From: Macrostomum lignano
Lineage: Eukaryota
Direction: 5' to 3'
Length of the DNA: 64,000 nt
Assembly (NCBI GenBank): GCA_002269645.1
Contig: NIVC01001172.1
Location: forward strand, 1 to 64,000
The notes below the pieces were generated by a model, which was not told the origin of the DNA, did no database searches, and was given only the letters and a program-made list of their open reading frames with translations. Below, one piece after another: positions 9,097-57,824 of the stretch (position 1 is its first letter; each line of letters starts with the position of its first letter). Both the position numbers and the translations under genes were made by a program.

Positions 9097-12000
9097 ATGG
9101 ACAGATCGCTAGAGGTTGCACCTGGTACAGCGGGACACTGCAGGTGAGTTAGGACGACTTTCTAAGAATCTAAGAGATTATAGACTATTTCTAAGAATCT
9201 AGAGATTCAACTAATTCTAGAAATCTAGAGATTAGGCTATTTCTAGAAATCTAGAGATTAGGCTATTTCTATAAATCTAGAGATTATGCTATTTCTAAGA
9301 ATCTAGAGATTAGGCTATTTCTAGAAATCTAGAGATTAGGCTACTTCTAGAAATCTAGAGATTAGGCTATTTTTAGAAATCTAGAGATTTGGCTAGTTCT
9401 AGAAATCTAGAGATTAGGCTAGTTCTAGAAATCTAGAGATTTGGCTAGTTCTAGAAATCTAGAGATTAGGCTAGTTCTAGAAATCTAGAGATTCGGCTAT
9501 TTCTAGAAATCTAGAGATTCGGCTATTTCTAGAAATCTAGAGATTAGGCTATTTCTAGAAATCTAGAGATTAGGCTATTTCTAGAAATCTAGAGATTAGG
9601 CTACTTCTAGAAATCTAGAGATTAGGCTATTTTTAGAAATCTAGAGATTAGGCTATTTCTAGAAATCTAGAGATTTGGCTAGTTCTAGAAATCTAGAGAT
9701 TAGGCTAGTTCTAGAAATCTAGAGATTTGGCTAGTTCTAGAAATCTAGAGATTAGGCTAGTTCTAGAAATCTAGAGATTCGGCTATTTCTAGAAATCTAG
9801 AGATTCGGCTATTTCTAGAAATCTAGAGATTCGGCTATTTTTAGAAATCTAGAGATTAGGCTATTTCTAGAAATCTAGAGATTAGGCTATTTCTAGAAAT
9901 CTAGAGATTAGGCTATTTCTAGAAATCTAGAGATTAGGCTAGTTCTAGAAATCTAGAGATTCGGCTATTTCTAGAAATCTAGAGATTCGGCTATTTTTAG
10001 AAATCTAGAGATTCGGCTATTTCTAGAAATCTAGAGATTCGGCTATTTCTAGAAATCTAGAGATTAGGCTATTTCTAGAAATCTAGAGATTAGGCTATTT
10101 CTAGAAATCTAGAGATTCGGCTATTTCTAGAAATCTAGAGATTAGGCTATTTCTAGAAATCTAGAGATTCGGCTATTTCTAGAAATCTAGAGATCTAGAG
10201 ATTGGTCTTTTCTACGAAGCTAAGAATCTGGAGATTTGGTTATTTCTAAGAATCTAGAGATTATGTATTGTGTTTCTAAAAATCGAGATTATGTTGATTC
10301 TAAGAATCTAGAACTTAAAAATTGTCAATCAAGACGCAGGCAATAGCTAAAAAATCATATTTCAGACGCTGCAAGGGGCGACTTGCAGCAGCGTGCGCCA
10401 TTCAGGATCGCCATGAGCTGCAGGGACCGTCTTCTTCAACTGGTGAGTCAGAACTGGGAGATGGGCTGTGCCTCACTATAGGCTGAATGAATACATTGGG
10501 AGAATGAACAGATAGACAGGTGTATGAATGTAAGAACAAGCAGATAGACAGGTGTATGAATGTAAGAACAAGCAGATAGACAGGTGTATGAATGTAAAAA
10601 CAAGCAGATAGACTGGTGTATGAATGTAAAAACAAGCAGATAGACAGGTGTATGAATGTAAAAACAAGCAGATAGACTGGTGTATGAATGTAAGAACAAG
10701 CAGATAGACTGTTGTATGAATGAGAGAATGAACAGATAGACTGGTGTATGAATGAGCAGATAGACAGGTTTATGGCTGGGAGAATGAGCAGATAGAAAGG
10801 TTTATGACTGGCAGAATGAGCAGATAGACAAGTGTATGACTGGCAGAATGAGCAGATAGACAGGTGTATGACTGGCAGAATGAGCAGATAGACAGGTGTA
10901 TGACTGGGAGAATGAGCAGATAGACAGGTGTATGACTGGGAGAATGAGCAGATAGACAGGTGTATGACTGGCAGAATGAGCAGATAGACAGGTGTATGAC
11001 TGGCAGAATGAGCAGATAGAAAGGTTTATGACTGGCAGAATGAGCAAATAGATAAGTTTATGGCTGGGAGAATGAGCCGACGGGCACTTATGTACATTCT
11101 TCTCACCTGAGGCAATGACACAATGTTGGCCATTTTTCATGCCCCTCAAATCTTCCAGCTCAGCGCACGGATCGGCTGCTTGAAAATGTCTCTACTAACA
11201 GCAATGCCCTGCTAAACGATTACGGAGAGGACGAGTCGGACACCAACTCATACACGAGCATCGCGGCCATTGTTCAACTGCAGCGCGGCACTGGGAGTCT
11301 GGGAATCAGCTTCATCGGAGGCTGCGATACCTCACTGGTTTGCAATGTTCTTACAATCAGTATTGAGTGAAGTTTCATTGCAAAAAATAAACAATGTAGT
11401 ATTGACAATTAGGAAGATAATATATATGCTATTATAACCCCCTGTCAGGGCTGCGTTCTCATTCAGAAGATCATGCCAGGCGGTCTGGCCGACAGAGACG
11501 ATCGACTGCGATCTGGTGACGTCATTCTACAGGTTTGAAAAACAATTACTAGTCACCTGCACTTTTGAGAATCTTATGTAACTTTATTATGTTGTATGCG
11601 CTGCACAATTCCCAGCACATACGCTATTTAAGCTACTTTCAACATAGTAGTACAATCACTTTTTCCCTCACTCACAATTTATTCCTTTGTAATTTGGCGC
11701 GCTTATCTGTCTCCCCCGCCCATTTTTATTGCCCGCATCTTCGCGCCGCTTGCATATATGTACATTGCCTGCCTAACCAACGTACACTACTCCTGAACTG
11801 ATAGCAACACTTGTCACGTGACTGCCAGTTCGATACAAACCAAACGCATCTGCCTTTTCAATTCACCTTTCTTACAAAAGATAGTTATAGTTTTCTTTAC
11901 TTGCTACTGAATATAGAAGTAGGTGATAACCAGTTAATTTTGCACTTTAACTAACAAAAGGTGAACGATAACGACCTGACCCGGGCCACTCATGGCGAGG

Positions 12001-31008: not shown

Positions 31009-32847
31009 TCAAGGCACCCAATTGTCCATGTGCAAATTGTGGCCAGCGGCCGCGTGTTTGGGCCGCCCGACCTTGGCGTTGGCGCTCCTGCCGCTTTCAG
31101 CCGCCGACTCCGCAGCTGAGTCGCTGGGACCCTGGGCGTTGAAACAGCCCAACGGATAAGCATAAATAGTTGTATTCGCCAGATTAACTAATAGTTCAAT
31201 ACAGCCAGATAGCCTAGTCTTGTGCCTGGAGTGAATCTGCACAGTGTAGGATGCGTTGCGAAATCTGGCGCACAGTTCCAGGCGGGGCTGGTGCTCGCCT
31301 GCGCACAGGGCCGACGGCATGCTGGCGGCGGACAGAAGCTTATCCACCTGCGCGGACGGCGGGTGTTCAAATCTACCAGCCTGTGCTCAAATCTACCAGC
31401 CTGTGTTCAAATCTACCAGCCTGTGTTCGAATCTACCAGCCTGTGTTCAAATCTACCAGCCTGTGCTCAAATCTACCAGCCTGTGTTCAAATCTACCAGC
31501 CTGTGTTCAAATCTACCAGCCTGTGTTCAAATCTACCAGCCTGTGCTCAAATCTACCAGCCTGTGTTCAAATCTACCAGCCTGTGTTCAAATCTACCAGC
31601 CTGTGTTCGAATCTACCAGCCTGTGTTCAAATCTACCAGCCTGTGCTCAAATCTACCAGCCTGTGTTCAAATCTACCAGCCTGTGTTCAAATCTACCAGC
31701 CTGTGTTCAAATCTACCAGCCTGTGTTCAAATCTACCAGCTGTGCTCAATCTACCAACCTGGCCTATCCTCAGACTAAACTACCCGATTCTCCTGGCCTA
31801 TCCTCAGACTAAACTACCCGATTCTCCTGGCCTATCCTCAGACTAAGCTACCCGGTTCTCCTGGCCTATCCTCAGACTAAGCTACCCGGTTCTCCTGGCC
31901 TATCCTCAGACTAAGCTACCCGGTTCTCCTGGCCTATCCTCAGACTAAGCTACCCGGTTCTCCTGGCCTATCCTCAGACTAAGCTACCCGGTTCTCCTGG
32001 CCTATCCTCAGACTAAGCTACCCGATTCTCCTGGCCTATCCTCAGACTAAGCTACCCGATTCTCCTGGCCTATCCTCAGACTAAGCTACCCGGTTCTCCT
32101 GGCCTATCCTCAGACTAAGCTACCCGGTTCTCCTGGCCTATCCTCAGACTAAGCTACCCGGTTCTCCTGGCCTATCCTCAGACTAAGCTACCCGATTCTC
32201 CTGGCCTATCCTCAGACTAAGCTACCCGGTTCTCCTGGCCTATCCTCAGACTAAGCTACCTAGTTCTCCACGCGATGCAGCACAGAAGCAGCCAGCCCCC
32301 ATACCAGTATGGACCCGGCTAGTAACAGCCGGGTTCTCATGGCCTGCCGATGCACCAGATAGGCGAACTGCACGCAGGCAGTCTGTCCGAGCCGAAGCCG
32401 GTCGGCCGTCAGCCTGGCGCAGCAGTTGCACGGCTCGGCAATTCGGCCACACATGCAGCTGCCAGCGTTGGCATCAAATTCGGACGGTTTAGCCAAGTGG
32501 CTTAGATAGCTGAGCGTCTTCCTGACATTGGAGCGCAGCTCATCGAGTTTCATGGGATTCTGCAGCAGTTCTGCAACGCCAGACTTGGACGCATTCAAAG
32601 TTGCTGGATAGTGCCGACTGCCGGGGCCTGACAGCAGCAGCTGGTCATTGTCCGGCAGCTCCCATGGTGTTGCTGACAAAGCAGCTTGAACAGTTGGCCA
32701 ATCCCTTTGGTTTGCCAGCCTGTCCCGATAGCCGCCGCCATGTAGCAGGTAGACAATTGCAAATATAAATGCCGCTAATAACAAACCATATAGCCAGTGC
32801 TTGCGCCAGCCAAGATAGCGGCGGTAGCGAAATGTTACTGGCAGCAT
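31009..32847 (-). CDS. DUF4773-like Cys-containing protein with N-terminal TM anchor (about 293 aa)
   Basis: Exons (minus) 32847-32305 (donor GTATGG) and 31347-31009 (acceptor CAG), phase 0. TM HWLYGLLLAAFIFAIVYLL; CMCGRIAEPCNCCA...ACVQFAY...LLLAGSIL|VDKLLSAASMPSALC...LELCARF...GCIEL...LGCF follows the CxC..CxCC / C / C pattern I recall for DUF4773. Confidence 0.75.
31365..31750. repeat. 20-bp minisatellite (GTTCAAATCTACCAGCCTGT)n in the DUF4773-like intron
   Basis: Direct reading. Confidence 0.96.
31760..32262. repeat. 34-bp minisatellite (CTGGCCTATCCTCAGACTAAGCTACCCGGTTCTC)n in the same intron
   Basis: Direct reading; abuts the 20-bp array. Confidence 0.96.
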
Positions 32848-36420: not shown

Positions 36421-37570
36421 CCATGCAGCCCGGCTGAGGCAAAAAGATCTCAGAAAGACATACAGAATGTGGACCCTAATAAATCTTGGTAACGCAATTA
36501 AAGGACTTGGATGATTGAATACCTACATTTTATAGATATGTACATGTACAGTACAAATGTAAACTATCGAAGATATAAATTTACAAGAACAAGAACAGCG
36601 GGAACACGAGATCGAATTTCCCGCAGGAAGTTCTCGCCGAGGTTTCCCGCGCGAGTTTTCCTTCCGAGGTTTTCCCGCGCAGGGTTTTTTCCAATCAAAA
36701 TTTCAAGTCAAATTCTAATCAAGCTTTTTCGGTGTCCCTGGGTGCTGGTATGATTTTACAATTGGTAGAGAGGAGATCCAGACGCTTATGTAGCTATAGC
36801 TATGTACGTGTACATGCACATGCGCATTGGAGGGTGGGACGGTGACAAGTGTTCTGCGTTCAAATGCAATGCCCCTGGTGTTGGGGATGAAATTATATAC
36901 ATTGGTTATGCTGGAAATTATGTTTATGATTATTTAGAAGTCCATTTGCTTGCCGAGCATATCTTGCAGAAGATTGCTTCCTGAACATTTCTTGCCACAA
37001 TTCTCACTGAAAGGATTTTTATGGATTGATTTTAACGGAGAGGAAATTTATGCATGATTGCAGTTTAAATGAGATGAAACTGATGGACTATAGTTTTACC
37101 TAGAGAATTTTTACGGACTTCAGTTCCAGTGTTGAACTTTTCAATCTAATAAACTTCGCAGATTCTCCTCTAACACGAAAATTAATAGTTTTCGTGGATT
37201 AGAATACAGAAAGTTTAATTGTTTGCGAGTGTATTATTTATATTGTTTACATAAAACTGTTTTCTTTGGCTAAGTGGTGGAAACGAGAAGTGTTTTTAAC
37301 TATGTACAGTTTTTGTTTTAACAAGTTACTATTTCCACAATTTTTTCGTACGTGTTTAAATTAAGACCTCCTTAACCCACGCGCGCGTGTGAGATTGATA
37401 TTTCATAAAAAAATCAGGCTAACTCATAATAGTTTTAATGCGCTTGTAAGGACGATTCGAGAGTAAATTTTTGTGTTTAAATAACTAAGTATTCAGTTCT
37501 AAAATTTATTTTAGAATTTTATGGATTCGTCTGTACCATAAGCAGTATAGGCCTATCTCAAATCAATGCA

Positions 37571-38804
37571 ATGTTGTTGGTTACCAATCCAACAACAAAA
37601 GTAATACTCTTATTTGTACTAACTATTACTGCACATTCCGAGCAATTAATAGAGGGTAAGAAAAATTTGTGAGATTGCATTTTAATTATTATTTTTCAAT
37701 TGGTTGGAGTAGAATGTCCTAAATTAAATTATTTTGAGTTTTGACAGTATGATGCAATGTAATTTTAATATATTGATATGCTCCTATGGTAATGAACTAG
37801 TTTCCTGATGTTTAATTACTTTCATTTAAAGTTTTACACAAGCAGACTAACAGTAAAGTAAGTATATTTTAAAATGTATGTACATTGATCTTTAAAATGG
37901 TCAAGTTTTAAGCTTTGCTTATGAAAGTAAATTTCTATAGCTAGCAGCAGAATAGAACCAGTAATGTGATTGACCTTTAAATTTCTACTTGAGCAATTTT
38001 TTTTCAAAATTTACTATATTAGGTGACCAATTGTGTTATTATATATATAATGCTATTTTTAAAGCTTTAACATATCTCAAATATATCTTTATAAAATTGT
38101 TTTTTTATAATATGCCATCAAAATATTTAAACATGCAAAACCAGGACATTTCCATTGGAGCATTTTTATATGCCATATTGCATAGTAACATTTAATAAAC
38201 CATTAATGAAAGTAAATGTCATTATTATATAACTAATAATTAAAATTGTTATTAGTTGTTTTGAGGATTAAGATAGTCTTTTTAAAAGAATAAACTTAAT
38301 TCTTCCTTTCCACTTTTCTCTTTCTTAGGGGCCTTTTAGAATTAGATATGCCTTTTTGTTAATCAATTTAAAAATGCTTTGGTAATAAGAAGCAAAAAGA
38401 GAATTTTAAAAAATAAAACCTAGTAGTATAATTTAGTTTTATTACCTTTTTATTAATAGACAATAAGTTAAATGCCTAATTCTAGGGCTTATAACTCCAA
38501 CAAACATAAAATAACCAAAATCAGTGTTTTTTTAATTGTTTACAAGTAATATTTTTGGTCTAAATATACTTTTCAATTCCCATTGTAGATAGCAAGTATC
38601 AACTCAGTAATGTAAAGGATCATGTTAATTTTTTAAGTGATTGTCCAATATTGTCAGCTTGCCAAGATCTTCATCGATTTGTAATCAGCTGTGATGCAGT
38701 ATCTACTTTGATCGGTTGTGGCACTTGTCTTGAAGGTTATCATTCATCACCTACACCTACGAAAGAACCAAGACAAGACCAACATCTGACAACTTGTATA
38801 CAAT
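37571..38804 (+). CDS. Two exons (signal peptide plus Cys-rich domain), probably an alternative or true 5' end of the NPDC1-like gene
   Basis: 37571-37655 MLLVTNPTTKVILLFVLTITAHSEQLIE (donor GTAAGA, phase 1); 38658-38804 ACQDLHRFVISCDAVSTLIGCGTCLEGY...DQHLTTCIQ (donor GTAAGT, phase 1 to 1), phase-compatible with the exon at 42835. Confidence 0.68.
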
Positions 38805-39467
38805 GTAAGTCTAAGCTTTTGTCTAATTCTTCTTAGTGATTTTTTATAGTATGCCATTGAAGTATATAAGCTTCACTCTAGGAAGGTTTAACATGGGTTA
38901 GGGGTCTAAGCCCAATTTATATATAAATTTTTGTCTATTATAGATTTTAATGCAAAAATTTAAGGATGGTAAAAATGGTTGATTCAAATTTATTCAATTG
39001 TTTGTAAAAAGAATGCAAATAGCTATCAGAAAAATTTTTTTCTTAAAAATCAAATCTCTCCTTACTAAATGTCTTGGTTGCTCCCTAATAGAATAATACA
39101 TACTTTAGCATGCTGATAGGTACTCCTTAATAGCAAAATTAGGAATTTTTTAGATTTATAAACTTTGATTTTTTTAGAAAACTACTTCCTAAAAAAAGAC
39201 AAACAGACTAGTGCTCATATGCATGTTTGAAAGCTTGGACGATAGGAAATAGTTACAAATGGTCAGAATGGTTCTCAGACCTAGCAAGGAAGTTCAAAAT
39301 AGTATTTCTTATTTCACTTATACAAGATAATTGAGGGCAGAGATTGCAATAAATTTGTCGCCTATGACCCCAGGTTCAACTGTGGCTTGCGTGCGCAAAA
39401 ATTGGCCCGAGGAGGTTGTCGTGCGATTCAAAGCCATAAGGATGATAAGAGCCAACCTCAAAGGGCA

Positions 39468-39625
39468 CAGAGAGTGTACATGTCTGAGCATCAGAAAGTC
39501 AGGGCCGCTGTACACCCTGCGTGAGCGTGTGCATGAGTGCGTGCCTGAGTACAGTACTGGCGCGCTTGTATGCGCTCAGCAGTCAGCGGAATGGGCAGAT
39601 TGCCCCAGCACTGGTTGTGAGGCAA
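39468..39625. repeat. Dispersed ~200-bp repeat, copy 3 (inverted relative to copies 1 and 2)
   Basis: gagagtgtacatgtctgagcatcagaaagtcagggccgctgtacaccctg... Confidence 0.85.
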
Positions 39626-41976
39626 TTTTTAAATGTGTGCGTGACTTGAGTACCGCGCTATGGTGTTACTTTTCTGTCAATAATAAGTAGCTTATCTAGA
39701 AATGGAAAAACAACAGACGGCTACTGCGGGGTATAAGCCTAGTTATTAGTGTGTTTTCATTGAAATTCGAAATGCCTTGAATCCATGTCACGATCCTAAT
39801 GCTTGAGCTTGGGCCTGGGCTAACACTTCTTAAATATCCTGTTCTGTTTTTCGTTGTCTCGGCTTACATTTGTCATAATAGATCGTGTTTTTTTGTAAGT
39901 CAAATATTATAAAAACAAATTTATATCTAATATCTATAGGCCCTGGCTTTGCACAGGTAGGGCAGGCAGACAGGCAGTGCGCCCCTGGAGTCCCTGGGCT
40001 GTCTAAAAATGGGGCTAATTTACTAGGATTAGCGGCTGCCTTGTGTCGGTAAATTCGTGGTGGTTGTGTTAGATTAGGTAGCTTATTTGACTAAAATACG
40101 CTCGTGTATATATTTAGAATTCCTTTTCCCTAACAAGACGGCAATCTAGAGGCTATGGAATAGTAGTAGTAATAATGATAATAGATTAGAGGGGCTGCAT
40201 ACGCAAATCTCGAAGCTAGCGGTAGGTGAGGGTGCAGCCGGTGCCGGCGCGTGCGTGCCTTTTGTTGCACGTGTTGGCCCTGCAGTTTATTATTATTATT
40301 ATTAAAGTGAGCGAAAAAGCTGCCTAGAATACAGTTGAAGCGTACGGGTGAGGGGCATCTGGCGGCATGAGGCAGGGAGAGAGGTGAATAGTTTGCAGAG
40401 AAATGCTTGTGTTTGAGCAGTGCTCAGTAAAAGCATATATTCAATGCCCCCTTGTTTTCAAGTATCTCTCTCTCTCTCTTCTCTACTCGAGCTGGCTCAG
40501 TGCGCGCCTGTTACAGCGTTTAAGTGAAAAGAATCGCAGCTTTGTGTCTTGACATTCGAAGAAAATTAATATTTGCAGTCGTTTCTTTGGAATTGCTTGT
40601 CTTTTCTATTAATTCTCTTTATAGTAGGCTGCATTCCATTGAGATGCTGGCTTGCTTGACTAGCTTACCCAGGTCCTGGACTTCGTGTCTAGGGGATATC
40701 CTGTCTTATAATATCCAGGATTTTAGCTTACGTTCAGTATCCTGGCTAGTTATTTAATTTGCTTCTCCTGCTTAAGTAGTCGGATGCAGACAAAATAAAA
40801 TAAATTATGCCTTTAATATTTTAACTGGTTTTGCTGTTTTCGCTAAAATGTTGCATTCTACGATTGTATCTGAATTTCCCAATAGCTTAACCAATCAAGG
40901 GAGAAGTTCTCTGTTGACTAAGCGCTCAAATGAGAATTAAGGGAATTTCTCAGTTGTTCAAGTGTTCAAGGGTCATATGGCTTTAACAAGTTTTTAGCAG
41001 ATAATGGGTTACAATTTCCTTCGTTTCTCTCCTTTCAAATTTATTTCGCTCAACAATTTGGGTAGCTGAAACGTATTTAGTTACTATAAGTAGTAGCAAA
41101 AATCTATCAGAAAAAGCTACATTGGTCGATTGAGTCTTATCCCTACTACTGCCACTACTGGTTATAAAAGCCTATGACTTTATAGTATATTCGCATTAGT
41201 ATACATTGCTCTCATTTTCTTTTCATTTTCTCTATTTTCAACAAAAAAACTGCACTGCTGGCGATTGGTAATCGTCAAGCACTTTTGGGGAATCGTACGC
41301 CGCGCACTAGGGATTAGCAGCACTATTTAGAGGCGGACAGGTAAGGGGAAGGCAGGACCGCGAACCCGGGGACTCTTAGGTAGAGGAAATTAATCCGCAT
41401 ACAAAAAATCAATCGCTTGGGTTAGAAAATCGATATGGCTTTCTTCCTCATATTTTCCATTTCCTGTTCTTCTCTCGCTTGCACAGTGTTCAACAATGGG
41501 GGAAGGGGGGGAGTTGCAGAGGTTTCTTGGCTAGATCCGAAAATCGATTAACTAACTGATTGATTTCCTCCCCCTTGCCCCAGCTTACAGGAAGTGTTGC
41601 AGTGCCGCTATATATTTGCTGCCGTACCGCTCTCGCTGGGGGAAAGTTGACTGCTCCCCTTTAGTGTTGCCTTCCTGTGTCCCCCCATAGTTGTGTCTAA
41701 CAGTTCAGCTTGTTGAGCTGCCGAGAATCGACAGTAACACCCGACAGAGGAATCCTCAGATGAGGAGCAATAATTATTCGAATATGAATCAGGATCTCGG
41801 CTTTGCGACCGTGCGCGACCTGCTGCTGCTGCTGTCGCTGCTGAGCTATTAAATGCTTTTCCGACGCCCGCTAGAATCCAACTGTCCATTCTAACCAATA
41901 ATTTCACTCTAATTAAAACAGATTTACTTTGCAAGCTTGCAGTTTACAATTGACCAATCTTTTTTTAAGTAGGCAA

Positions 41977-43522
41977 ATGCGAGTTAGAAAAGTTTTATCG
42001 AATCTGAGCCTTGTTGTATTGCTGCTGCTGCTAGTCAATGGTGAGTGTGGCCAGCAACTGTTTAGTGCTCCAATTTCTTACACGGGAGAGGGCTTTTATT
42101 TCTCTAAGCCCTATTGTAGGTTAGGGTTTTGAAACTGATAAATCTCCAAGTACAAGATCGAATTTAGAGATCTTAAAGGTGTGAACTTTTACATGGATAT
42201 CTCTCAAAATAGGAGATTTTGAAATCGATAGATCTCATAGTAGGAGATTTTGGCATGGATAGATCTCATAGTAGGAGATTTTGGCATGGATAGATCTCAT
42301 AGTAGGAGATTTTGGCATGGATAGATCTCATAGTAGGAGATTTTGGCATGGATAGATCTCATAGTAGGAGATTTTGGCATGGATAGATCTCATAGTACGA
42401 TATTTTGACATGGATAGATCTCAAAGTAGGAGATTTTGACATGGATAGATCTCATAGTAGGAGATTTTGGCATGGATAGATCTCATAGTAGGATATTTTG
42501 GCATGGATAGATCTCATAGTAGGAGATTTTGGCATGGATAGATCTCAAAGTAGGAGATTTTGACATGGATAGATATCATAGTAGAAGATTTTGGCATGGA
42601 TGGATCTCATAGTAGAAGATTTTGGCATGGATAGATCTCATAGTAGAATATTTTGGCATGGATAGATCTCATAGTAGGAGATTTTGGCATGGATAGATCT
42701 CAAAGTAAGAGATTTTAACACGGATAGATCTCATAGTAGGAGATTTTGACATAGATAGATCTCAATATGTCGATAATACTGAATATTATAACAGTTCAAT
42801 AATTAGTTTTATTCTATCCACCTGTCACCCGCAGCCTCCTCGCCATCTGAGTCTGCGGCCGCCTCGCTAAGACTAAATGAGGACAGCCTGGTCGACCAGC
42901 TCTCCGCCAGAAGTAACGCCAACACCGATTCAGCTAATCCAGGTGAGTAAAAACATTTTTGACGATTTAAACTTTCTGCAGAAAACCTCAAGCATTTCAC
43001 ACCCCCTAAAAGTAGGCGACCCCGACTCCAGTCTGAAGCTGAGCGCCCGGGCCGACCCGGCCGGCAGCAACGGCACCGACGGCCTCGGGCCGGACGACAT
43101 ACCGATTCGTCGGCATCCCGGCAACGGCGACTTCGTCTTCTATAGTGAGTCTTGCTGTGGTCTTCTTTGGACACTAATTGTTTTCTAGTGACGCAGTATA
43201 TTTAGGCAAAATTGGATATTTGATTGCCATGGGGTATTTTGATCCAATTATTTATAAATCAATATCGAAATTTGTCCACAATTTCAACTGCAGTCATCGT
43301 TGGCACCACAACTGGATTGGGCCTGCTATTGATTATTATCTGCGCTGTCTGCTGGTTCAAGTGAGTTCAAGAGCTATATGTTACCTGTCTGTCTGTTTGT
43401 CTGTCTGTCTGTCGATCTGTCCGTCTGCCTGTCTGCCTGTCTGTCTGTCTGTCCGCCTGCCTGTCTGTCTGTCTGTCTGTCCGTCTGCCTGTCTGTCTGT
43501 CTGTCTGTCTGTATCTGTCGAC

Positions 43523-43571
<49 letters not shown>

Positions 43572-43609
43572 GGCTGTCTGTCTGGCTGTCTGTCTTGGTG
43601 TCTGTCGAC

Positions 43610-43642
<33 letters not shown>

Positions 43643-43696
43643 GGCTGTCTGTCTGTCTGTCTGTCTGTCTGGCTGTCTGTCTTGGTGTCTGTCGAC

Positions 43697-43729
<33 letters not shown>

Positions 43730-43783
43730 GGCTGTCTGTCTGTCTGTCTGTCTGTCTGGCTGTCTGTCTTGGTGTCTGTCGAC

Positions 43784-43840
<57 letters not shown>

Positions 43841-43866
43841 GGCTGTCTGTCTTGGTGTCTGTCGAC

Positions 43867-43947
<81 letters not shown>

Positions 43948-43970
43948 TAGTGTCTGTCTGTCTGTCTGCC

Positions 43971-44039
<69 letters not shown>

Positions 44040-44065
44040 GGCTGTCTGTCTTGGTGTCTGTCGAC

Positions 44066-44142
<77 letters not shown>

Positions 44143-44165
44143 TAGTGTCTGTCTGTCTGTCTGCC

Positions 44166-44226
<61 letters not shown>

Positions 44227-47200
44227 TAGTGTCTGTCTGTCTGTCTGCCTGTCTGCCTGCCGGCCTGTCCGTCTGTCTGTCGATCTATCGGTCTGTACAT
44301 CACGTATGTATTTGCTGTTATTTATTGCCAATTGGTACCTTCGCAGTACACACAACTGCAATTACCCATCACGCAGGTACAACGCGGTTACTAAGCAGGC
44401 TGACGACGAGTTTGTGAACTCCGAGTTCACCTCGCAGCAGCACAAAAACTCCTCCGGACATCCGGGCGACGGGAAGCTGGCGCTGAGCGCTCAGATGTAT
44501 CACTACCAGCATCAGAAGCAGCAGATGATGGCTCAGGAGAAGTGAGTCATCTTGGCTCTTCTTTTCCTTCAAGAACTTAAAGAACGGTGCCCTTTAGTTT
44601 ATAGCTTATTACTTAAGAAAAATCCGGTCGAGTGTTTTTAAATGATTTGTTCTTTAAACTACAGTGCACGAAGTACCTCAATACTGTTCATAACCTGATC
44701 ATTTTCTTTTTGTTTTATAGTTGCCACTTTCTAGTACCTAAATCGTCTCTTAATCTATAGGAATGGTATCTAACCCCTGGCAGTCCCATATGTCCCCGTC
44801 AATCTTCTCAAAATTTTTATGAATCTCTAATCCCTGTGAATATCCTCAAATTTCTATGAATCTTGTCTAATCCCTGTATATCTCATCTAATCCCTGTAAA
44901 TCCCTTCTAATCCCTTTGATTCTCCCCTGTTCCATGTGAGCTCCTCTAATCCTTTTGAATATCTTCTAATCCCTGTGAATGTCCTTTAACCCCTGAGTCT
45001 CTTCCAACCCCTGTGAATGTCCTCTAATTCCTGAGTCTCCTCCAATCCCTGTGAATGTCCTCTAATTCCTGAGTCTCCTCCAATCCCTGTGAATGTCCTC
45101 TAATCCCCGAGTCTCCTCCAATCCCTGTGAATGTCCTCTAATCCCCGAGTCTCCTCCAACCCCTGTGAATGTCCTCTAATCCTTGTGAGTCTCCTCCAAT
45201 CCCTGTGAATGTCCTCTAATCCTTGAGTCTCCTCCAATCCCTGTGAATGTCCTCTAATCCCCGAGTCTCCTCCAACCCCTGTGAATGTCCTCTAATCCTT
45301 GTGAGTCTCCTCCAATCCCTGTGAATGTCCTCTAATTCCTGAGTCTCCTCCAATCCCTGTGAATGTCCTCTAATCCCCGAGTCTCCTCCAATCCCTGTGA
45401 ATGTCCTCTAATCCCCGAGTCTCCTCCAACCCCTGTGAATGTCCTCTAATCCTTGTGAGTCTCCTCCAATCCCTGTGAATGTCCTCTAATCCTTGAGTCT
45501 CCTCCAATCCCTGTGAATGTCCTCTAATCCCCGAGTCTCCTCCAATCCCTGTGAATGTCCTCTAATCCTTGTGAGTCTTTTCTAATCCCTGTGAGTTTCC
45601 TCCAATCCCTGTGAAAACCTCTAATCCCTGTAAATCCCCTTTATTCCCTTCGAATTTTCTTTAATCCCCTCGAATCTCCTTTAATCCCTGTAAATTTCAT
45701 CTAATCCCTTGTAATCTCTTCTATTCCCTGTACATCCCCTCTATTCCCTTCGAATCTCCTCCAATCCCTAGGAAACCGGCCCCTACAAAGCTCCCCCGAA
45801 CACCGTCAATGCACAATTGCATTAGCTACTCTTATTCATTCGCAGATCCAACGACCAGAGCAAGCAGGGTGGGTCGGACGTTGACTCGGACCTGGAAAAT
45901 GAGGACGCCGATTTCACAGTGTACGAGTGTCCCGGCCTGGCCACGGTAAGCTGCTCAATCATTGTTTTTTAATCACCGATATTATAGCGCTTGACAACAA
46001 ACGCTGAATATCTGTTAGGGGCGCCAGATACAGAGGGGAGGCAGATACAGAGGGGAGCTAGATACAGAGGGGAGGCAGCTACAGAGGGGGAGCAGATGCA
46101 GAGGGGGGCAGCTACAGAGGGGGAGGCAGCTACAGAGGGGAGCCAGATACAGAGGGGAGCCAGATACAGAGGGAGGCAGATACAGAGGGAGCCAGATACA
46201 GAGGGGAGCCAGATACAGAGGGGAGCCAGATACAGAGGGAGGCAGATACAGAGGGAGGCAGATACAGAGGGGAGGCAGATACAGAGGGGAGGCAGATACA
46301 GAGGGGAGGCAGATACAGAGGGGAGGCAGATACAGAGGGGAGGCAGATACAGAGGGGAGGCAGATACAGAGGGGAGGCAGATACAGAGGGGAGGCAGATA
46401 CAGAGGGGAGCCAGATACAGAGGGAGGCAGATACAGAGGGGAGGCAGATACAGAGGGGAGGCAGATACAGAGGGGAGCCAGATACAGAGGGGAGCCAGAT
46501 ACAGAGGGGAGCCAGATACAGAGGGGAGCCAGATACAGAGGGAGGCAGATACAGAGGGAGCCAGATACAGAGGGGAGCCAGATACAGAGGGGAGCCAGAT
46601 ACAGAGGGAGGCAGATACAGAGGGGGAGCAGATGCAGAGGGGGGCAGCTACAGAGGGGGAGGCAGCTACAGAGGGGAGCCAGATACAGAGGGGAGCCAGA
46701 TACAGAGGGAGGCAGATACAGAGGGAGCCAGATACAGAGGGGAGCCAGATACAGAGGGGAGGCAGATACAGAGGGAGGCAGATACAGAGGGAGGCAGATA
46801 CAGAGGGGAGGCAGATACAGAGGGGAGGCAGATACAGAGGGGAGGCAGATACAGAGGGGAGGCAGATACAGAGGGGAGGCAGATACAGAGGGGAGGCAGA
46901 TACAGAGGGGAGGCAGATACAGAGGGGAGGCAGATACAGAGGGGAGGCAGATACAGAGGGGAGGCAGATACAGAGGGAGGCAGATACAGAGGGGAGGCAG
47001 ATACAGAGGGGAGGCAGATACAGAGGGGAGCCAGATACAGAGGGAGGCAGATACAGAGGGAGCCAGATACAGAGGGGAGCCAGATACAGAGGGGAGCCAG
47101 ATACAGAGGGAGGCAGATACAGAGGGAGGCAGATACAGAGGGGAGGCAGATACAGAGGGAGGCAGATACAGAGGGGAGGCAGATACAGAGGGGAGCCAGA

Positions 47201-47867
47201 TACAGAGGGGAGGCAGATACAGAGGGGGGTGGCTACAGAGGGGGCTACAGACGCCAGGTACAGAAGGGGCAGCTACAAAGAGGACGCCAGCTACAGAGTG
47301 GGGCAGCTACAGAGGGGACGCCAGCTACAGAGTGGGGAAGCTACAGAGGGGACGCCAGCTACAGAGTGGGGCAGCTACAGAGGGCCAGGTACAGAAGGGG
47401 CAGCTACAAAGGGGACGCCAGCTACAGAGTGGGGGAAGCTACAGAGGGGACGCCAGCTACAGAGTGGGGCAGCTACAAAGGGGACGCCAGCTACAGAGTG
47501 GGGAAGCTACAGAGGGGACGCCAGCTACAGAGTGGGGAAGCTACAGAGGGGACGCCAGCTACAGAGTGGGGAAGCTACAGAGGGGACGCCAGCTACAGAA
47601 TGGGGAAGCTACAGAGGGGACGCCAGCTACAGAGTGGGGAAGCTACAGAGGGGACACCAGCTACAGAGTGGGGAAGCTACAGAGGGGACGCCAGCTACAG
47701 GGTGGGGCAGCTACAGAGGTCCTCCTTAAAGTTTCCATTCAAACTGTCTCTTATTTTTAAAATACCGACGCAATTAAACATTGCAGACAGGGGAGATGGA
47801 GGTGCGCAACCCGCTCTTCAAGGAGGAGCTGGACCAGCAGCAGCAGCAGTCACAAGCGGCCAACTGA
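41977..47867 (+). CDS. NPDC1: NPDC1/cab-1-like type I membrane protein (237 aa from ATG 41977)
   Basis: Exons 41977-42040, 42835-42942, 43016-43144, 43294-43360, 44377-44541, 45846-45945, 47787-47867, phase-consistent, total 714 nt. Signal peptide, [24 protein letters not shown], and diagnostic motifs [14 protein letters not shown] and [17 protein letters not shown]|[11 protein letters not shown]. Confidence 0.95.
42192..42765. repeat. 31-bp minisatellite (ATGGATAGATCTCATAGTAGGAGATTTTGGC)n, NPDC1 intron
   Basis: Direct reading. Confidence 0.96.
43385..44285. repeat. (TCTG)n microsatellite with periodic interruptions, NPDC1 intron
   Basis: Direct reading; recurring GGCTGTCTGTCTTGGTGTCTGTCGAC interruption. 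Confidence 0.97.
44810..45770. repeat. 38-bp (dimer of ~19-bp) minisatellite with monomeric decayed flanks, NPDC1 intron
   Basis: Core CTCCAATCCCTGTGAATGTC+CTCTAATCCCCGAGTCTC. Confidence 0.94.
46018..47718. repeat. 17-bp (GAGGGGAGGCAGATACA)n array grading into a 34-bp dimeric array, NPDC1 last intron
   Basis: Direct reading; source of the spurious 589-aa and 365-aa ORFs. Confidence 0.97.
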
Positions 47868-48072
47868 ACTAGCCAACTGACCTCTCCCATTCTTAGCTAC
47901 TGCATGCGCCTTTATTGCACATAAAGGGTGGCTGTCTGTAAAGCACAAAGCTATTCTCATATCAACTGCTTATCCTGTCCATATGTCTATCTTCTTACTT
48001 CGATACATGTTTCAATCTGCTGTCTACTAATACGAGCTATAGATTAGCTACATATCTTAGCTTACAGTATAT

Positions 48073-48244: not shown

Positions 48245-48844
48245 CAGTATATCGATATGCATAGATATTAATATTCCTATAGATTAGAAAATGTTGATCC
48301 CACTTTTAAGTCCAAATCTAGTCTTCATCTAGTCGCTTCGTCTGCTTCAAAAATATTTAATGGTGTTAGCGGTGCGGTTAATTCATCTTTAAAATAAGTA
48401 AAACATAGTAAATAAGAGTGAAAGAAAAACTATTTTTTTCAACCGGTCACAAAGTCTGTGATTATTGCAGAGTGTTACAAAATGTTTATTATGAAATGCC
48501 AACCGACTCTACTTGTGACGGGCGCCGTTTTGAAGTTAAATGCTATTTTTCTATTTTTCTCCCTCACCGGTTAACAAACGATATCATGAAATATTTTTGT
48601 TGCAAAACACAATAATTTCGCACAATTTTTCCCGTTTGCCTGTGCAGTTGCACAAAATCTATCATACTCGTACAGGTATCTTAAATACAACTTCAAAGCT
48701 GCGCACAGCTGTCAGTTTCAGGTCAGAAACAGCTTGCTATTGAGAAACAGAATTGTTTCCCAACATTTTAATTCATATTTTTCGGTTATAATGACTTCAT
48801 CATTTATACTATCATCTGACGATTTGGGAAGCCGGCGCTGGCCG

Positions 48845-49575
48845 AGCAACTGAGGATCTGGGAGGCTGGCCCAGCAGCTGAGGAACTGGGAGGCTGGCCC
48901 AGCAGCTGAGGGTCTGGGAGGCTGGCCCAGCAGCTGAGAATCTGGGAGGCTGGCCCAGAGACCGAGAATCTGGGAGGCTGGCCCAGAGACCGAGAATCTG
49001 GGAGGCTGGCCCAGCAGCTGAGGAACTGGGAGGCTGGCACAGCAGCTGAGGAACTGGGAGGCTGGCACAGCAGCTGAGGGTCTGGGAGGCTGGCCCAGCA
49101 GCTGAGAATCTGGGAGGCTGGCCCAGAGACCGAGAATCTGGGAGGCTGGCCCAGCAGCTGAGGAACTGGGAGGCTGGCACAGCAGCTGAGGAACTGGGAG
49201 GCTGGCACAGCAGCTGAGGGTCTGGGAGGCTGGCCCAGCAGCTGAGAATCTGGGAGGCTGGCCCAGAGACCGAGAATCTGGGAGGCTGGCCCAGCAGCTG
49301 AGGAACTGGGAGGCTGGCACAGCAGCTGAGGAACTGGGAGGCTGGCACAGCAGCTGAGGGTCTGGGAGGCTGGCCCAGCAGCTAAGGAACTGGGAGGCTG
49401 GCACAGCAGCTGAGGTTCTGGGAGGCTGGCCCAGCAGCTGAGGATCTGGGAGGCTGGCCCAGCAGCTGAGGGTCTGGGAGGCTGGCCCAGCAGCTGAGGA
49501 TCTGGGAGGCTGGCCCAGCAGCTGAGGATCTGGGAGGGCTGTGGTGGCCCAGCAACTGAGGGGCTGAGAGGGCGG
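48845..49575. repeat. 28-bp minisatellite (GGAGGCTGGCCCAGCAGCTGAGGAACTG)n with 26-bp variants
   Basis: Direct reading. Confidence 0.96.
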
Positions 49576-52196: not shown

Positions 52197-52434
52197 ATTT
52201 CTAGGAAGGCTAGCAAGTGCCTTATGCAGTCCGTCGAAGTTGGATAAAAATTTAGCGCAGAATAACAGCAATCATTTTGACGAACATACAGGTCTAATGA
52301 TCTAAGAAGCCTACAAAAATGACTTCAATTCAGCCAAAAAAAGTCAATTTCCTAGATTGTTTTTTGTAAAATACATTACGTAGCTTAAAAAACCTCATTC
52401 TCCTACTAACAGTAAGTAGGAGACCTAAAAGCGG

Positions 52435-55400
52435 CTATTTTCCAGCAGCGTCTCCATCGGGAGGCAGCAGTTTCTCAACTCCGCCATCAAACTTGCCAAC
52501 ATAAACGGCGCTCGCTTTGCCAATAAACAGGCCGGTCTCGACTAGACCTGGCAAATTTAGATAATTAGGAAAAACGGTATGAAAAAACTGTTACTACTAC
52601 TTAGGCTCGATACTCGTAGTAGCTCACCAGGCATCATGTGCAGTTCCCGATCAACCTGTTCCCATTTCTGTTGAGCATCGAACTGCCAGTCTATTAGGAA
52701 ATTGCCATTGTCTGTCACTACCGGACCCTGTTGGTGAAAGTGTAAGAGGTGCAAGGCAGATGATGGTTCAGAATAATCAAATTCGTCTTTTGAGTTGCAT
52801 CTCCTTTTTCAGAGGCCTGGCATTGCCCTTCTGCGAAGGCATTGCTCTGGGCTGCATGAGAGACATACATACATTTTAGTACCTTTATTCTAGCCTCTCA
52901 TTCTACTTGCTTATAGAGTTTTTGACCAAATTATGTACTTGTTTGAATCAAGTGATCTAGAAGCTCAACTATTAAAAAATATATGAATAACTTTGAATCT
53001 ATGGGTAAGGATAATGTAATTTGAGTCATGCAGACGTGTCTTACAATAATTTATATTTTCTTACATATTATAGTGCAAAAGAGCTTCACTTTTGTAGCAT
53101 GTCTACCGTTTGCTATGTTAGATGCCTGCTCCAATATGATAATGCATTTTATCACAATATTACATATTGAATTGCAGCTTTAGCCAAGGAAGCGCCGGAT
53201 ATACGCCCCCCCCCCGAGCCAGACAACCTTCATCGTGTTCTGCACCTCGGCAGGGGTGGTGAAGCCAACGACACCCCAGGACACAAATGCCGCAAACCAA
53301 GAGTTCCTGTTTCCACAACTTAACAGCAACGGCCTTCGCAGCCGCATTACGTAACTAATCTCCCGGCTAGACACCGCGCGCCCTGCGTTCGTCTATCTTC
53401 AAGAGACCAAACTCAGAACATCCGAGGACTTCCACCTACTGCCGGGCCTGTCATCGCCGCCCCGTTGTGACAGAGTGCCATACGATTCCAATCCGCAGGG
53501 CGCAGACCCGGCCAACCGGCATCCTATCCAGCCGCCGTTCACCGCGCAGCCCGTCACACTGCGCGCGGCCCCGACTGCTGGTGCGCTGTCTGACCTGGAA
53601 CGAATCGGACAGGGACACCTGGTGCAGCGGCTGCAGATCCCGTCGCACCGCCTGCACCAATCGTCACCCACCCAGAGAGACAGAACCAGTGACAGCCGCA
53701 AACGCCACCCCCGCGCCCGCCCCTCTACCTGAGCAAGGCCTAGGACCTACCTGCAGGCGACGCGCCCCCAACAACCGCGACTACTGCTGCAGCGGCTGCC
53801 TTGGCCACCGCAAATGCAGTAGGCGAGGCAGCTTACAGAAAACGAGCGTGGCGGCTAGCCAGCCTGGAAACCAACATATATAAGTGACATCTGCAAGTGT
53901 AATAAATATAGACTTTTCACGATTGCTTCCATCTACTATTTTCAGTGGTTTGGAAATGTTTCATTTTGTTGTACACCTTTTCGTATAATCGTATTTTTGT
54001 ATGCGCTCCAAATTATCTAGTGGCGCAATCGAACCTATTGAAAGAAAATGTGCATTACATTATCTGAATATTTAATCAACATTACTTTAATTATTTTAAT
54101 AATACTTAGCTTTAGTTATAACTTAAAAAGATGCTATTTGCACTTCTGTGTCCCGTCCTTGCACAATCTCAAAATTCTTCCTACTTTTCTTATTTTCTAC
54201 TCATTTTGAGAGGCACAAAAAGCGTTGACACCCTGTAAAATACATGTTGATGCCAGGACCCTGAATTCAAGATACACCGACATTTAAATATGTAACATCT
54301 CAGCATAAATGTACTCTAGAGATCATCTACATCTACAAGAGAAATGGCTTAGAGGTGGCGCCAGCTACAGATGGGCGCCAGCTACAGATGGGGCGCCAGC
54401 TACAGAGGGGACGCCAGCTACAGATGGGGCGCCAGCTACAGATGGGCGCCAGCTACAGATGGGGCGCCAGCTACAGAGGGGACGCCAGCTACAGATGGGC
54501 GCCAGCTACAGATGGGGCGCCAGCTACAGAGGGGGCGCCAGCTACAGATGGGGCGCCAGCTACAGATGGGCGCCAGCTACAGATGGGCGCCAGCTACAGA
54601 GGGGGCGCCAGCTACAGATGGGGCGCCAGCTACAGATGGGCGCCAGCTACAGATGGGCGCCAGCTACAGATGGGGCGCCAGCTACAGAGAGGGCGTCAGC
54701 TACAGATGGGACGCCAGCTACAGATGGGGCGCCAGCTACAGAGGGGGCGCCAGCTACAGATGGGGCGCCAGCTACAGATGGGCGCCAGCTACAGATGGGC
54801 GCCAGCTACAGATGGGGCGCCAGCTACAGAGAGGGCGTCAGCTACAGATGGGGCGCCAGCTACAGATGGGGCGCCAGCTACAGAGGGGGCGCCAGCTACA
54901 GATGGGGCGCCAGCTACAGAGAGGGCGTCAGCTACAAAATTGGCGCCGCTAAAATCTCCTGCTCTTTCCTAAATCACCGCGTCAGCGCTAACCATTTTGC
55001 CAGCGGACTCTCGCAGCACAGCTCGTCCGCCAAATCGCGTCTCAATTTGCCGCTTAACCAGAGCCCAGGCCATCGGCACAACTTCTATCGGGACGCCGGC
55101 GCGCCAGCGTTCGCCAAATTGCCTACTAATTTTAGCTTCATCGCAGACAATTACTAACGAATTCGCGGCGGTGTCGACGATTTTTTCTTGCAATAGGCAG
55201 CCGCCGCCGCCTTTAATTAAGGCCAAACTGGCGTCGACTTCGTCGGCTCCATCGACGGCCCAGTCTAGAGGTGCGGTGCAGTATTCCAGCTCAGCCAGCG
55301 GCATGCCGTGCTCTCTGATTAGCTGCTTTGCCTGCGCAGGGCCAAGAGGGTGGATGAGACACAATGAATGCTCGCGTGCGAGTACTAGAAGTATGCAGAT

Positions 55401-56196
55401 CCTGCATTCTATAATTTACTCTGATTAAGTACACGAACACGTTACACGTACAAGTACACGTTAAAAGTACCACCTTAGCACTCTAAGTGTTGAGGAACAC
55501 GAGCACTTGGATTAGTTAAGTACACGCGCACTCTAAGCAGTAAATTACACGCGCACTTCAAATATTTAAGTAACACGAGCACTTGGACTATTTAATCGTA
55601 AGTACACACGCACTCGAAGAGTTTAAGTACACGCGCACTTTGAGTGTTTGGGTATACGAGTACTTTAAGTGCTTAAGTACACGCGCACTCGAACCTTAAA
55701 GTACAACTCAACACTACACTCAATCACAATTAGGCCAGAGGAATGAAGAAGTCGTTAATGAATTTGATTTTTATTCACAAACCTGATAAGAAGTTGGCAC
55801 GCATTTAACTGACCAGCTTTTCTGCTTCAAAAGCTCAGCTAAAATAATAGAAGAAAATGAACATTATTAACTTTGAAGAAATATGCTAAAATGCGACTTA
55901 ATATTTGAGCACTTACCAATGCGCTCAACAACAAACACCATGGTTCTACCAGATCCAATACCAATAGTTTGGCAGTTCTAAAATTATATAGAACACATTG
56001 ATCAAATTCAACTGAAATGAATCACTTTCTAAACCTGAACTTTGATAACTCATATCATAGCAATAAAACACATTCAGACAAAAAAGCAACCAACCTGTAG
56101 ATTCTCATCCACAGCCATGTTGGCAGCAAGCTGCCTGGCACTGTCTTTCCTGCTAGCAAGTTCACCATTTGTATAACTGCTATTTGTTGTAGTCAT
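52435..56196 (-). CDS. RPIA: Ribose-5-phosphate isomerase A (256 aa)
   Basis: Exons (minus) 56196-56095, 55977-55917, 55838-55783, 55331-54993, 52727-52628, 52547-52435, phase-consistent, total 771 nt. Motifs IGIGSGRT, CVPTSYQ|A, AVDGADEVD, LIKGGGGCLLQEKIV, GVPIEVVP, GPVVTDNGNFLIDW, PG|LVETGLF. Confidence 0.97.
53180..53870 (+). mobile_element. Degenerate LINE fragment (APE endonuclease N-terminus) antisense in RPIA intron 4
   Basis: QLNSNGLRSRIT*LISRLDTARPAFVYLQETKL at about 53310-53420 (N.NGL...LQET motif), then frameshifted ..RCDR; outer limits approximate. Confidence 0.7.
54357..54935. repeat. 17/18-bp minisatellite (GGCGCCAGCTACAGATGG)n, RPIA intron 4
   Basis: Direct reading. Confidence 0.96.
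55430..55700. repeat. Degenerate ~30-bp repeat (AAGTACACGCGCACTC..) in RPIA intron 3
   Basis: Recurrent aagtacacg(c/a)gcact motif. Confidence 0.7.
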
Positions 56197-57824
56197 TTTG
56201 AATTGGCCAGTAGTGAAAGCCACAGATATTTGGACTTTAGACTTTGATAAAAATGGTGCTACTGTACCACCTGAAAAAGCAATCAAGTAACTTAACAAAG
56301 TAGCTAAGAAAGTCACTTCTAGGCAAAAATATCAATTATAATAGCTAAAAGTCATAATTTTTTAAAAACTTACTAATCACTTTCTTAAACATCTTATATC
56401 CCAAAGCCTGAAAAAAGAAAGCAAAACTAATTATTTGTTAAATTAAAAAACTGGAAACTTAGACTAAAAATTTAGAAAATTAGGCAAGGAAGTAGCTTTT
56501 CTGATTAGAACAAACAAGAATCTATATAATCAGTATCCTATTCTATAGGCTATAAAGATAAGATCAATTGGTACACCTATATAACTTGCTTATATATATG
56601 CTAGAGATCATAGAAAGATAAATATAGAGGGGGCAAAAAGGCCATGACTATCCTTTTAGCTATGGCCAAAATTTGGGCCATACTTTTTTGTCTATGTCTA
56701 TGTAACTATGCATCTTTTCTAATATATAAATTTTGGCCTTGGGTTGTAGTTGCTTAGTATTGTAGCTTGCCTATCTCTCCTACACAATTTTGCTACCAAG
56801 GGGTCACTCTCTAAGGTACATAAGCCACATGAAAGGGTCACCCAGTGTGTGCCAGGGCTCAGGAGATGTTGCAATAAGGGACCTTTTTTCCAATTGCTAT
56901 AATAAAATATCATTTTGGCACTCTGCATTGCTTTGCCAGTGGTGACATTGCTACATATATAGATAGACTATGCCAAATAACTTTGCCAACTTATTTTTAA
57001 TGTACTGGATTAAGAATAATTTAGGCCTAACTTAAGTTAAAAACTAATTTTATCTTTACTACTAAGTTTTAGAAATTTCAGTACAAATAGATCTAGGGCA
57101 GGCCTAACTAGTCTTGAATGAGAATGACTAAGTCATGAGGTCATTTCAACCAGTTAGGATTGTCTATATTTAAATAACAAAATAACACAAGTTAATTTTA
57201 ACATTGTAAATCGGTGTTAAAAATGCTAGCCATGATTGTTAACATTTGAGATTTGATAGGCCTAGGAGTTTTAGGTCGTAAAATACTTCAAATAAGAAAC
57301 AGAAATTTATGCTTGTCTGGTTTTTAGAATCGCTGTTTGGTAAAACAAAAGCCGAATAGCCTGGATAGGACTGGTGAGGTAGTTTGGCGGGAAACGTTTT
57401 TGAATAAAAATTTTGAAGAAAATGTTTTTTCAGAAATCTATCGCATACCCGCAAACAACTCATTTTTAGTATACTCAGCAACATTGAAAAGTCGCCACTG
57501 TATGTGCGTGAGCAGCTAGTTTCTCTCGGACTCTGAAATAGAAGATACGAGAAAACTGATCGGGTAGCTTTCATTCGTTGAACTCTTGCACACCGCTCCC
57601 CCCACTTCATTCCTCAACTCAAGTCTGACGCGGCGTAGCTAAGTTGCGTCACTCGCAAAGATTGAGAGACTTCACCTGCACTTCTCAAAGGGTGCCACCG
57701 AATTCGTCAACTCTGTATTTATAGGCCACCCTCAATGGGTATGTGGAAATATAATAGTTCATGTTGTTCTCAATCTCATTCCTCTACAGTTTTATCTAAT
57801 GTGCCTAAGCCTATATAGTGCTTT

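Follow-up and report, generated by a model that had tools for sequence, protein, structure and literature searches.

NPDC1 (Pfam PF06809) is a type I neuronal membrane protein of vertebrates whose biology is poorly understood. In Caenorhabditis elegans the protein CAB-1, which has been connected with the AEX-3/RAB-27 secretion pathway, shares the C-terminal cytoplasmic region of NPDC1; its ectodomain is not known to resemble that of NPDC1. We found no solved structure for the NPDC1 family. In mammals the N-terminus lies outside the cell, and a ligand interaction is lost when parts of it are deleted (PMC12848103); recent work also implicates the ectodomain in the binding of ligands (PMC12848103, PMC6235402). 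Here we analyse an NPDC1-like gene of the flatworm Macrostomum lignano in a window of 64,000 nucleotides, positions 1-64000 of contig NIVC01001172.1 (assembly GCA_002269645.1, Mlig_3_7). The gene occupies positions 37571-47867 on the plus strand and is very probably one of at least three near-identical M. lignano NPDC1-family copies, encoding a type I membrane protein and possessing two 5' ends. Its product shares with vertebrate NPDC1 the signal peptide, a six-Cys module with a CGxC motif, the helix segment that follows, one transmembrane (TM) helix and two cytoplasmic motifs of 14 and 21 residues.

The original prediction for this DNA held that, through hidden exons further upstream, the NPDC1-like gene has a second, Cys-rich N-terminus beside a short form. 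This is supported: spliced in two sister copies of the locus, the corresponding exons reproduce one deposited long and one deposited short protein exactly. At the window locus itself the open reading frames (ORFs) of a long form of 316 and a short form of 237 amino acids are intact, with canonical GT/AG at all junctions. The distal exons E1a and E2 and the proximal exon E1b all end in phase 1 and join position 42835 in frame, giving two mutually exclusive ATG-bearing 5' ends of compatible phase that use one acceptor. Both sister contigs are colinear with the window at about 95% identity overall; all nine exons are 97.6-100% identical, and E1a and E1b are 100% identical among the three copies. 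Contig NIVC01002170.1 (L003) carries GenBank PAA60270.1 (P0121, Mlig001369.g2), a long form of 317 amino acids whose coding sequence (CDS) begins at the ATG homologous to that of E1a. On contig NIVC01003865.1 (L001) lies PAA49481.1 (P0002, Mlig001369.g3), a short form of 238 amino acids, and here the CDS begins at the E1b-homologous ATG. When the boundaries of E1a-E2-E3 to E8 were moved to the first contig and spliced, PAA60270.1 was obtained exactly (317/317), and the boundaries of E1b-E3 to E8 moved to the second gave PAA49481.1 exactly (238/238). The annotation of the M. lignano assembly combines genome-guided assembly of RNA-seq data by StringTie/TACO with a de novo transcriptome, ORFs being called by TransDecoder (PMC5730564). 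Since the annotation is transcript-derived and the identity with the sister-copy proteins is exact, the junctions are transcript-supported, albeit in the sister copies.

The first coding exon of the long isoform, E1a (37571-37655, plus strand, 85 nt), opens with an ATG, encodes MLLVTNPTTKVILLFVLTITAHSEQLIE and ends in phase 1 at a GTAAGA donor, as expected of the signal-peptide exon that had been proposed here. The signal peptide reads MLLVTNPTTKVILLFVLTITAHS/EQLIE and reaches a hydropathy of 3.43 in a 9-residue window. A scan for phase-1 mini-exons of the form ATG...GT[AG]AG across the 2.1 kb upstream of E2 (36500-38588) returned E1a as its single candidate. E2 follows at 38589-38804 (plus strand, 216 nt, phase 1-1), between the acceptor cccattgtag/AT and a GTAAGT donor, and encodes the six-Cys module with the pattern C-x5-C-x9-C-x8-C-x2-C-x22-C. 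The phase-1 donor after 38804 had been correctly identified from the sequence; the start of the exon had been placed at 38658, a position that proved to be internal to it. With the long isoform as first assembled used as query, a UniRef protein of M. lignano (P0001, 316 amino acids) covered 100% of its length and carried, at the boundary of the two upstream exons, 23 residues absent from the query. These residues, DSKYQLS.VKDH.NFLSDCPILS, occur in every deposited protein that contains the exon (P0001, P0121, P0123 and P0124) and are encoded in frame from the 38589 acceptor, 69 nt upstream of 38658. The deposited proteins thus need the earlier start, and the five Cys first counted become six: the missing one is the first of the module (DCPILSAC) and sits within the 69-nt 5' extension. 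Because the longer E2 supplies the sixth Cys, neither a micro-exon nor a junction from 38804 to 43016 providing a TGC, both of which had been entertained, is needed. No model has such a micro-exon or uses such a junction, and the latter is rejected because skipping of E3 would delete the conserved helix segment. A single symmetric exon holds the entire six-Cys module in three phyla, which further favours the 38589 acceptor.

The length of the open frame was dismissed as evidence for the Cys exon, 90 codons being unremarkable in this context (when the AT-rich block was shuffled 500 times, 174 shuffles attained that length). We also observed a sharp shift in base composition within the one gene: the G+C content of the two distal exons is 0.33 and 0.37, with flanks at 0.26-0.28, versus 0.48-0.69 in the common exons.

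The protein scores well above the cut-off of 23 bits for the Pfam NPDC1 profile (PF06809), at 105.6-106.6 bits (E about 1e-30), with 106.6 bits for the 237-residue short product, and the match spans profile positions 224-334, corresponding to the TM and cytoplasmic part only. Two cytoplasmic motifs, one of 14 residues and one of (F/Y) plus 19 residues, are invariant in alignments of 18 and 40 sequences that include the window protein. In the N-terminal half all six Cys and the D/E-x-x-I/V-D-x-L helix segment behind them align across phyla, and do so only with the 38589 acceptor; a pre-specified profile-profile comparison of flatworm with non-flatworm N-termini (hhalign) gave P=4.8e-4 and a probability of 32%. 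The inter-Cys loops are longer in the flatworm (x9, x8, x22) than in vertebrates (x7, x6, x11). A protein search with the N-terminal alignment found only a garbled ML2 model (P0127) and missed obvious members. Hydropathy is in accordance with a type I topology: a signal peptide is present, the N-terminus of the short form being hydrophobic as well, and the scan finds a single TM segment, at residues 177-206 of the long and 98-127 of the short form. The gene structure likewise has the family layout of a signal-peptide exon, a single phase 1-1 Cys exon and a common exon.

Several observations weigh against this reading of the locus. The E2 peptide alone is unrecognised by Pfam NPDC1, and the profile search that had been suggested as a check gave no match to the family with either the shorter or the corrected version of the exon. 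A 39-column hidden Markov model (HMM) of the non-flatworm Cys module placed E2 at rank 2 with E=0.18 among 1842 six-frame pieces of the window. phmmer with the 71-residue E2 peptide against 1.84 billion representatives returned three matches, all artefacts. Between copies E2 is no better conserved than the introns (divergence of 1.9-2.3% and 1.3-3.6%, respectively), and all five E2 substitutions among the three copies are nonsynonymous, with the Cys untouched and counts too small to tell relaxed from positive selection. The near-identity of the copies makes the assignment of transcripts to a locus uncertain, and this locus has merely a 75-residue fragment in GenBank. The assembly is rich in duplicated blocks of at least 95% identity (PMC5730564), and because these are so extensive the true source copy of a transcript is uncertain.

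Some details complete these observations. The three phmmer matches were rejected as homologues, each being a translated tandem repeat with 8-9 summed stretches. The E2 substitutions fall at 38611, 38625, 38667, 38745 and 38768 (N/K, V/G, D/A, S/L and P/S) and spare the CGTC motif; the bases that distinguish the window copy are 38611T, 38625T, 38667A and 38768C. At the protein level this copy differs from its sisters by N35/V40/D54/P88 in exon 2, by I versus V in E4 and by one Gln fewer. In E7 (45943) it reads GLATTGEMEV where its sisters, like almost every other NPDC1 protein, have the near-invariant GLAPTGEMEV; a deep M. lignano paralog (P0004) reads GLATTKEMEV and thus shares the T with the window copy.

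The GenBank entry for the 75-residue protein (L004) matches the window letter for letter from 34495 on, and both its range of 34495-57867 and its gene end at 47867 agree with the window coordinates. The entry holds no gene call between 34495 and 44494, and the sole product at the NPDC1-like locus is the 3' fragment BOX15_Mlig007008g1 (P0122), which starts from an ATG at 44495 within E6. It could be supposed that the exons are intact and the window copy is silent or weakly used, the isoforms coming from the sister copies with the two forms possibly partitioned between them. Indeed the deposited long CDS belongs to NIVC01002170.1, its short counterpart to NIVC01003865.1 and the fragment alone to NIVC01001172.1, and E2 of the window copy has 4-5 private nonsynonymous changes. 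We nevertheless regard a silent window copy as unlikely. All nine exons and every splice site are intact in the three copies, including the invariant E1a and E1b, transcript-to-copy assignment can be arbitrary among blocks duplicated at this identity (PMC5730564), and the call of a 3' fragment means that some transcript did map to the window copy.

E1b (41977-42040, plus strand) is the alternative first coding exon of the short isoform and encodes a 21-residue signal peptide ahead of a GTGAGT donor in phase 1. It had been proposed in this role from its sequence, which fits, and the exact recovery of PAA49481.1 agrees with it. The mini-exon scan of the 4-kb E2-E3 intron gave two candidates, of which only E1b is hydrophobic, and neither Rfam nor Pfam has a match in the E2-to-E1b intron, hence no competing gene. 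Within this otherwise AT-rich intron lies a G+C-rich island at 39300-39700 with a 119-residue ORF and no Pfam or Rfam match, which could be part of a repeat or have a regulatory role. Upstream of E1b, the stretch at 41250-41976 on the plus strand is a putative promoter and 5' untranslated region (5'UTR) of the short isoform: it is a G+C-richer tract with a TATATAT at 41609, about 370 nt upstream of E1b, and a YTNCAG-like motif at 41937-41942. A promoter of its own just upstream of E1b may drive the short form, in keeping with the two promoters some 4.4 kb apart that had been proposed.

A related organism offers a further view of the short transcript. Contig L005, an intron-less contig of 1198 nt from SRA run SRR30276812, encodes a short-type protein, 63% identical, that has a signal peptide of its own and lacks the Cys module; a TAG in the same frame precedes the ATG by 12 nt. 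The exon junctions of L005 match E5/E6 and E6/E7 of the window. Ahead of the short-form ATG the 5'UTR runs for at least 352 nt and lacks the spliced leader (SL), which weakly favours an own start site for the short form; similarity between this 5'UTR and the region upstream of E1b was not detected. The sequence matches gathered for the gene included no M. lignano Logan contig, the UniRef protein P0001 has no contig on record, and literature searches for the gene identifiers and for the SRA run found no papers.

With a single promoter, the short mRNA could be made from the long pre-mRNA by SL trans-splicing upstream of E1b in competition with the 38804-to-42835 cis-splice. Between 30 and 39% of M. 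lignano genes are SL trans-spliced (PMC5730564), TTGCAG at 41937-41942 matches the trans-acceptor YTNCAG and lies 34 nt before the E1b ATG, and a pyrimidine-rich tttttttaagtag ends at 41972. However, YTNCAG is frequent, with four instances in the 600 nt upstream of E1b, and the leader, CGGTCTCTTACTGCGAAGACTCAATTTATTGCATG, terminates in ATG, so that its addition would create a short out-of-frame upstream ORF before the real ATG. The SL-less 5'UTR of the related short-form cDNA and the G+C-richer tract with its TATATAT also speak against such an origin, and we consider it improbable, slightly more so than a silent window copy.

A start site belonging to E1b itself must further be set against the view that E1b is a cassette exon of the long transcript and the 238-residue protein a by-product of ORF calling or of re-initiation. 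A UniRef model of 400 residues (P0124) indeed splices E2 to an acceptor inside E1b (41983/41984), which adds 57 in-frame nt (19 residues). The stronger-looking acceptor at 41972/41973 would break the frame, with the protein cut off behind the Cys module, and the ORF from the E1b ATG would then be the longest. Yet the N-terminus of P0124 is implausible, the model stems from the older, predictor-based ML2 annotation, and the hydrophobic stretch that it places in mid-ectodomain is seen in no homolog. The ORF of the related cDNA starts at its own signal peptide behind an upstream in-frame stop, with no Cys-domain sequence, and in frogs true alternative first exons occupy the corresponding position. 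We therefore give the cassette explanation little credence; the E1b cassette of P0124 is regarded as a predictor artefact, or may be a third isoform. A further view, in which E1a and E2 make up an independent little gene that encodes a secreted Cys-rich peptide and has no relation to the NPDC1 gene, is hardly credible: read-through of the 38804 donor would give ...TTCIQCKSKLLSNSS* with a stop at 38834-38836 (about 111 residues with the corrected E2; an ORF at 38651-38836 is listed) and the GenBank record has no gene over the E1a-E2 region, but the transcript-derived PAA60270.1 joins E1a/E2 to the NPDC1 exons and already contradicts this, the module occupies the same place, with the same intron phase, in the paralog, in Lingula and in the frog, and the six-Cys pattern aligns with NPDC1 N-termini.

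In the preferred arrangement of two alternative starts, the distal one reads E1a and E2 into the 316-residue protein, whose ectodomain opens with the ancestral NPDC1 Cys-rich module, and the proximal one uses the E1b signal peptide alone to give the 237-residue protein, with the same linker, TM helix and cytoplasmic tail and without the module. The module is predicted to be compact, presumably with three disulfides, and would cap the ectodomain of the long form only. The long form could then engage the extracellular partner of the module, and the short form would retain the membrane and cytoplasmic functions, in signalling or trafficking, independently of that partner.

The part of the gene common to both isoforms, all on the plus strand, begins with E3 (42835-42942), which is entered in phase 1 and contributes (S/A) plus 35 residues that align with the vertebrate ...EEIDFLA... 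segment; its boundaries are as originally claimed and it is present in both sister-copy reconstructions. E4 (43016-43144) encodes the ectodomain linker and has a tandem AAG/TAG acceptor of the NAGNAG type, reading aaAAG/TAG/GCGACC at 43010-43015. An extra Val in P0123 and P0124 (SANP-V-GDPD) fits use of the AAG at 43012, and P0121 and P0002 use the TAG at 43015. E5 (43294-43360) carries the TM helix (22 residues), its junction with E6 being backed by the spliced cDNA L005. The cytoplasmic part is encoded by E6 (44377-44541), with the invariant 14-residue motif, by E7 (45846-45945), with an acidic stretch and a segment of 10 residues, and by the last coding exon E8 (47787-47867), which ends ...AAN before the stop at 47865-47867.

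Tandem arrays fill four of the six introns 3' of E1b, at 42192-42764 (a 31-mer, x18.5), 43385-44296 (CTGT, x229), 44825-45769 (a 38-mer, x20-24) and 46017-47719 (a 17-mer, x101), and a 28-mer x25 array follows the stop codon at 48837-49537. They yield long spurious ORFs and may explain the truncated GenBank gene call at the window locus. Upstream, on the minus strand, the neighbour at 32260-32847 has a Cys-rich first-exon ORF of 195 residues and is probably the DUF4773 gene of the L003 feature table; there is no plus-strand gene in that region able to donate exons to E1a. The downstream neighbour, at about 52435-56262 on the minus strand, is a ribose-5-phosphate isomerase A gene.

The nine-exon gene with products of 316 and 237 residues should replace the 75-residue fragment BOX15_Mlig007008g1, which amounts to an annotation gap at one locus. 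The novelty is low, because both isoforms are already public as deposited proteins of the sister loci and frog RefSeq models share the isoform design; specialists will not be surprised, alternative first exons being common. The useful outputs are the corrected nine-exon model and the recurrence across phyla of a symmetric Cys exon and of a start with or without the Cys module. M. lignano is tractable to transgenesis, which makes isoform-specific knock-down or reporters feasible.

Comparison with other NPDC1 genes extends the picture beyond the three copies. The deep M. lignano paralog (Mlig008605.g1 / 015153.g1 / 003819.g1; P0004, P0125) shares the helix exon, TM segment and NPDC1 tail with the window gene and is just 42-47% identical to it. 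Its first five Cys are spaced identically (x5, x9, x8, x2), and the Cys exons of both genes end with the sixth Cys, two codons and one nucleotide. The exon phases also recur: as at the window locus, where the signal-peptide exon ends in phase 1 and the Cys exon is phase 1-1, the paralog P0004 has a signal-peptide exon at 10001-10091 (phase 1) and a Cys exon at 10655-10867 (213 nt, phase 1-1). In the brachiopod Lingula anatina (L007) the signal-peptide exon ends at 1073 in phase 1 and the Cys exon spans 2232-2417 (186 nt, phase 1-1), and in the frog Phyllobates terribilis (L006) the corresponding figures are 1088 and 47782-47916 (135 nt), again in phases 1 and 1-1. The claim that splicing 38804 to 42835 restores the ancestral domain order is upheld by these genes, in which the position and phase of the junction are the same.

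A mini-exon scan of the Cys/E3 intron of the paralog found no first exon resembling E1b, and no short form of this gene is deposited. In Lingula the intron between the Cys and common exons contains an unannotated phase-1 mini-exon of the form ATG...GTAAGA (L007, 9760-9841) that encodes the signal-peptide-like MLKVWLGVACLVWSVLGSQQLNGHGNR, its peptide beginning MLKVWLGVACLVWSVLGSQQ. It is a possible counterpart of E1b, as a lead only: it was one of two such mini-ORFs in 12 kb, and the frog positive control failed the same hydrophobicity filter.

A parallel outside the flatworms exists in frogs. In four species, examined by sequence (Dendropsophus, Hyperolius, Engystomops and Phyllobates), RefSeq holds isoform pairs with and without the Cys module, and in a fifth, Dendrobates, the cluster list includes isoforms of matching lengths. 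Frog isoform X1 consists of a signal peptide and the Cys module, and X2/X3 have another signal peptide joined just before the helix segment. In Phyllobates terribilis (XP_073496721.1 / XP_073496722.1) the alternative first exon at 52431-52536 ends in phase 1, lies in the intron between the Cys and common exons and uses the acceptor at 71505. The anuran layout is thus the same as that of the window, with an alternative signal-peptide exon in the same intron and one acceptor before the ...IDFLA... helix. The alternative first exons of frog and flatworm have no evident similarity when compared by eye, the frog introns are 10-40 times longer than those of the flatworm, and RefSeq derives the frog isoforms by computational modelling. 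Omission of the Cys module with retention of the tail, in flatworm isoforms and in frog gene models alike, suggests that the module is a separable unit under regulation. It is tempting, if rather doubtful, to regard the design with or without the Cys module, in which an internal alternative first exon with a signal peptide of its own lies in the intron directly behind the symmetric Cys exon, as ancient and conserved among the NPDC1 genes of bilaterians. If this were true, the function of the NPDC1 ectodomain, which in mammals includes binding of PILRA or of alpha-synuclein fibrils, would be regulated by promoter choice everywhere.

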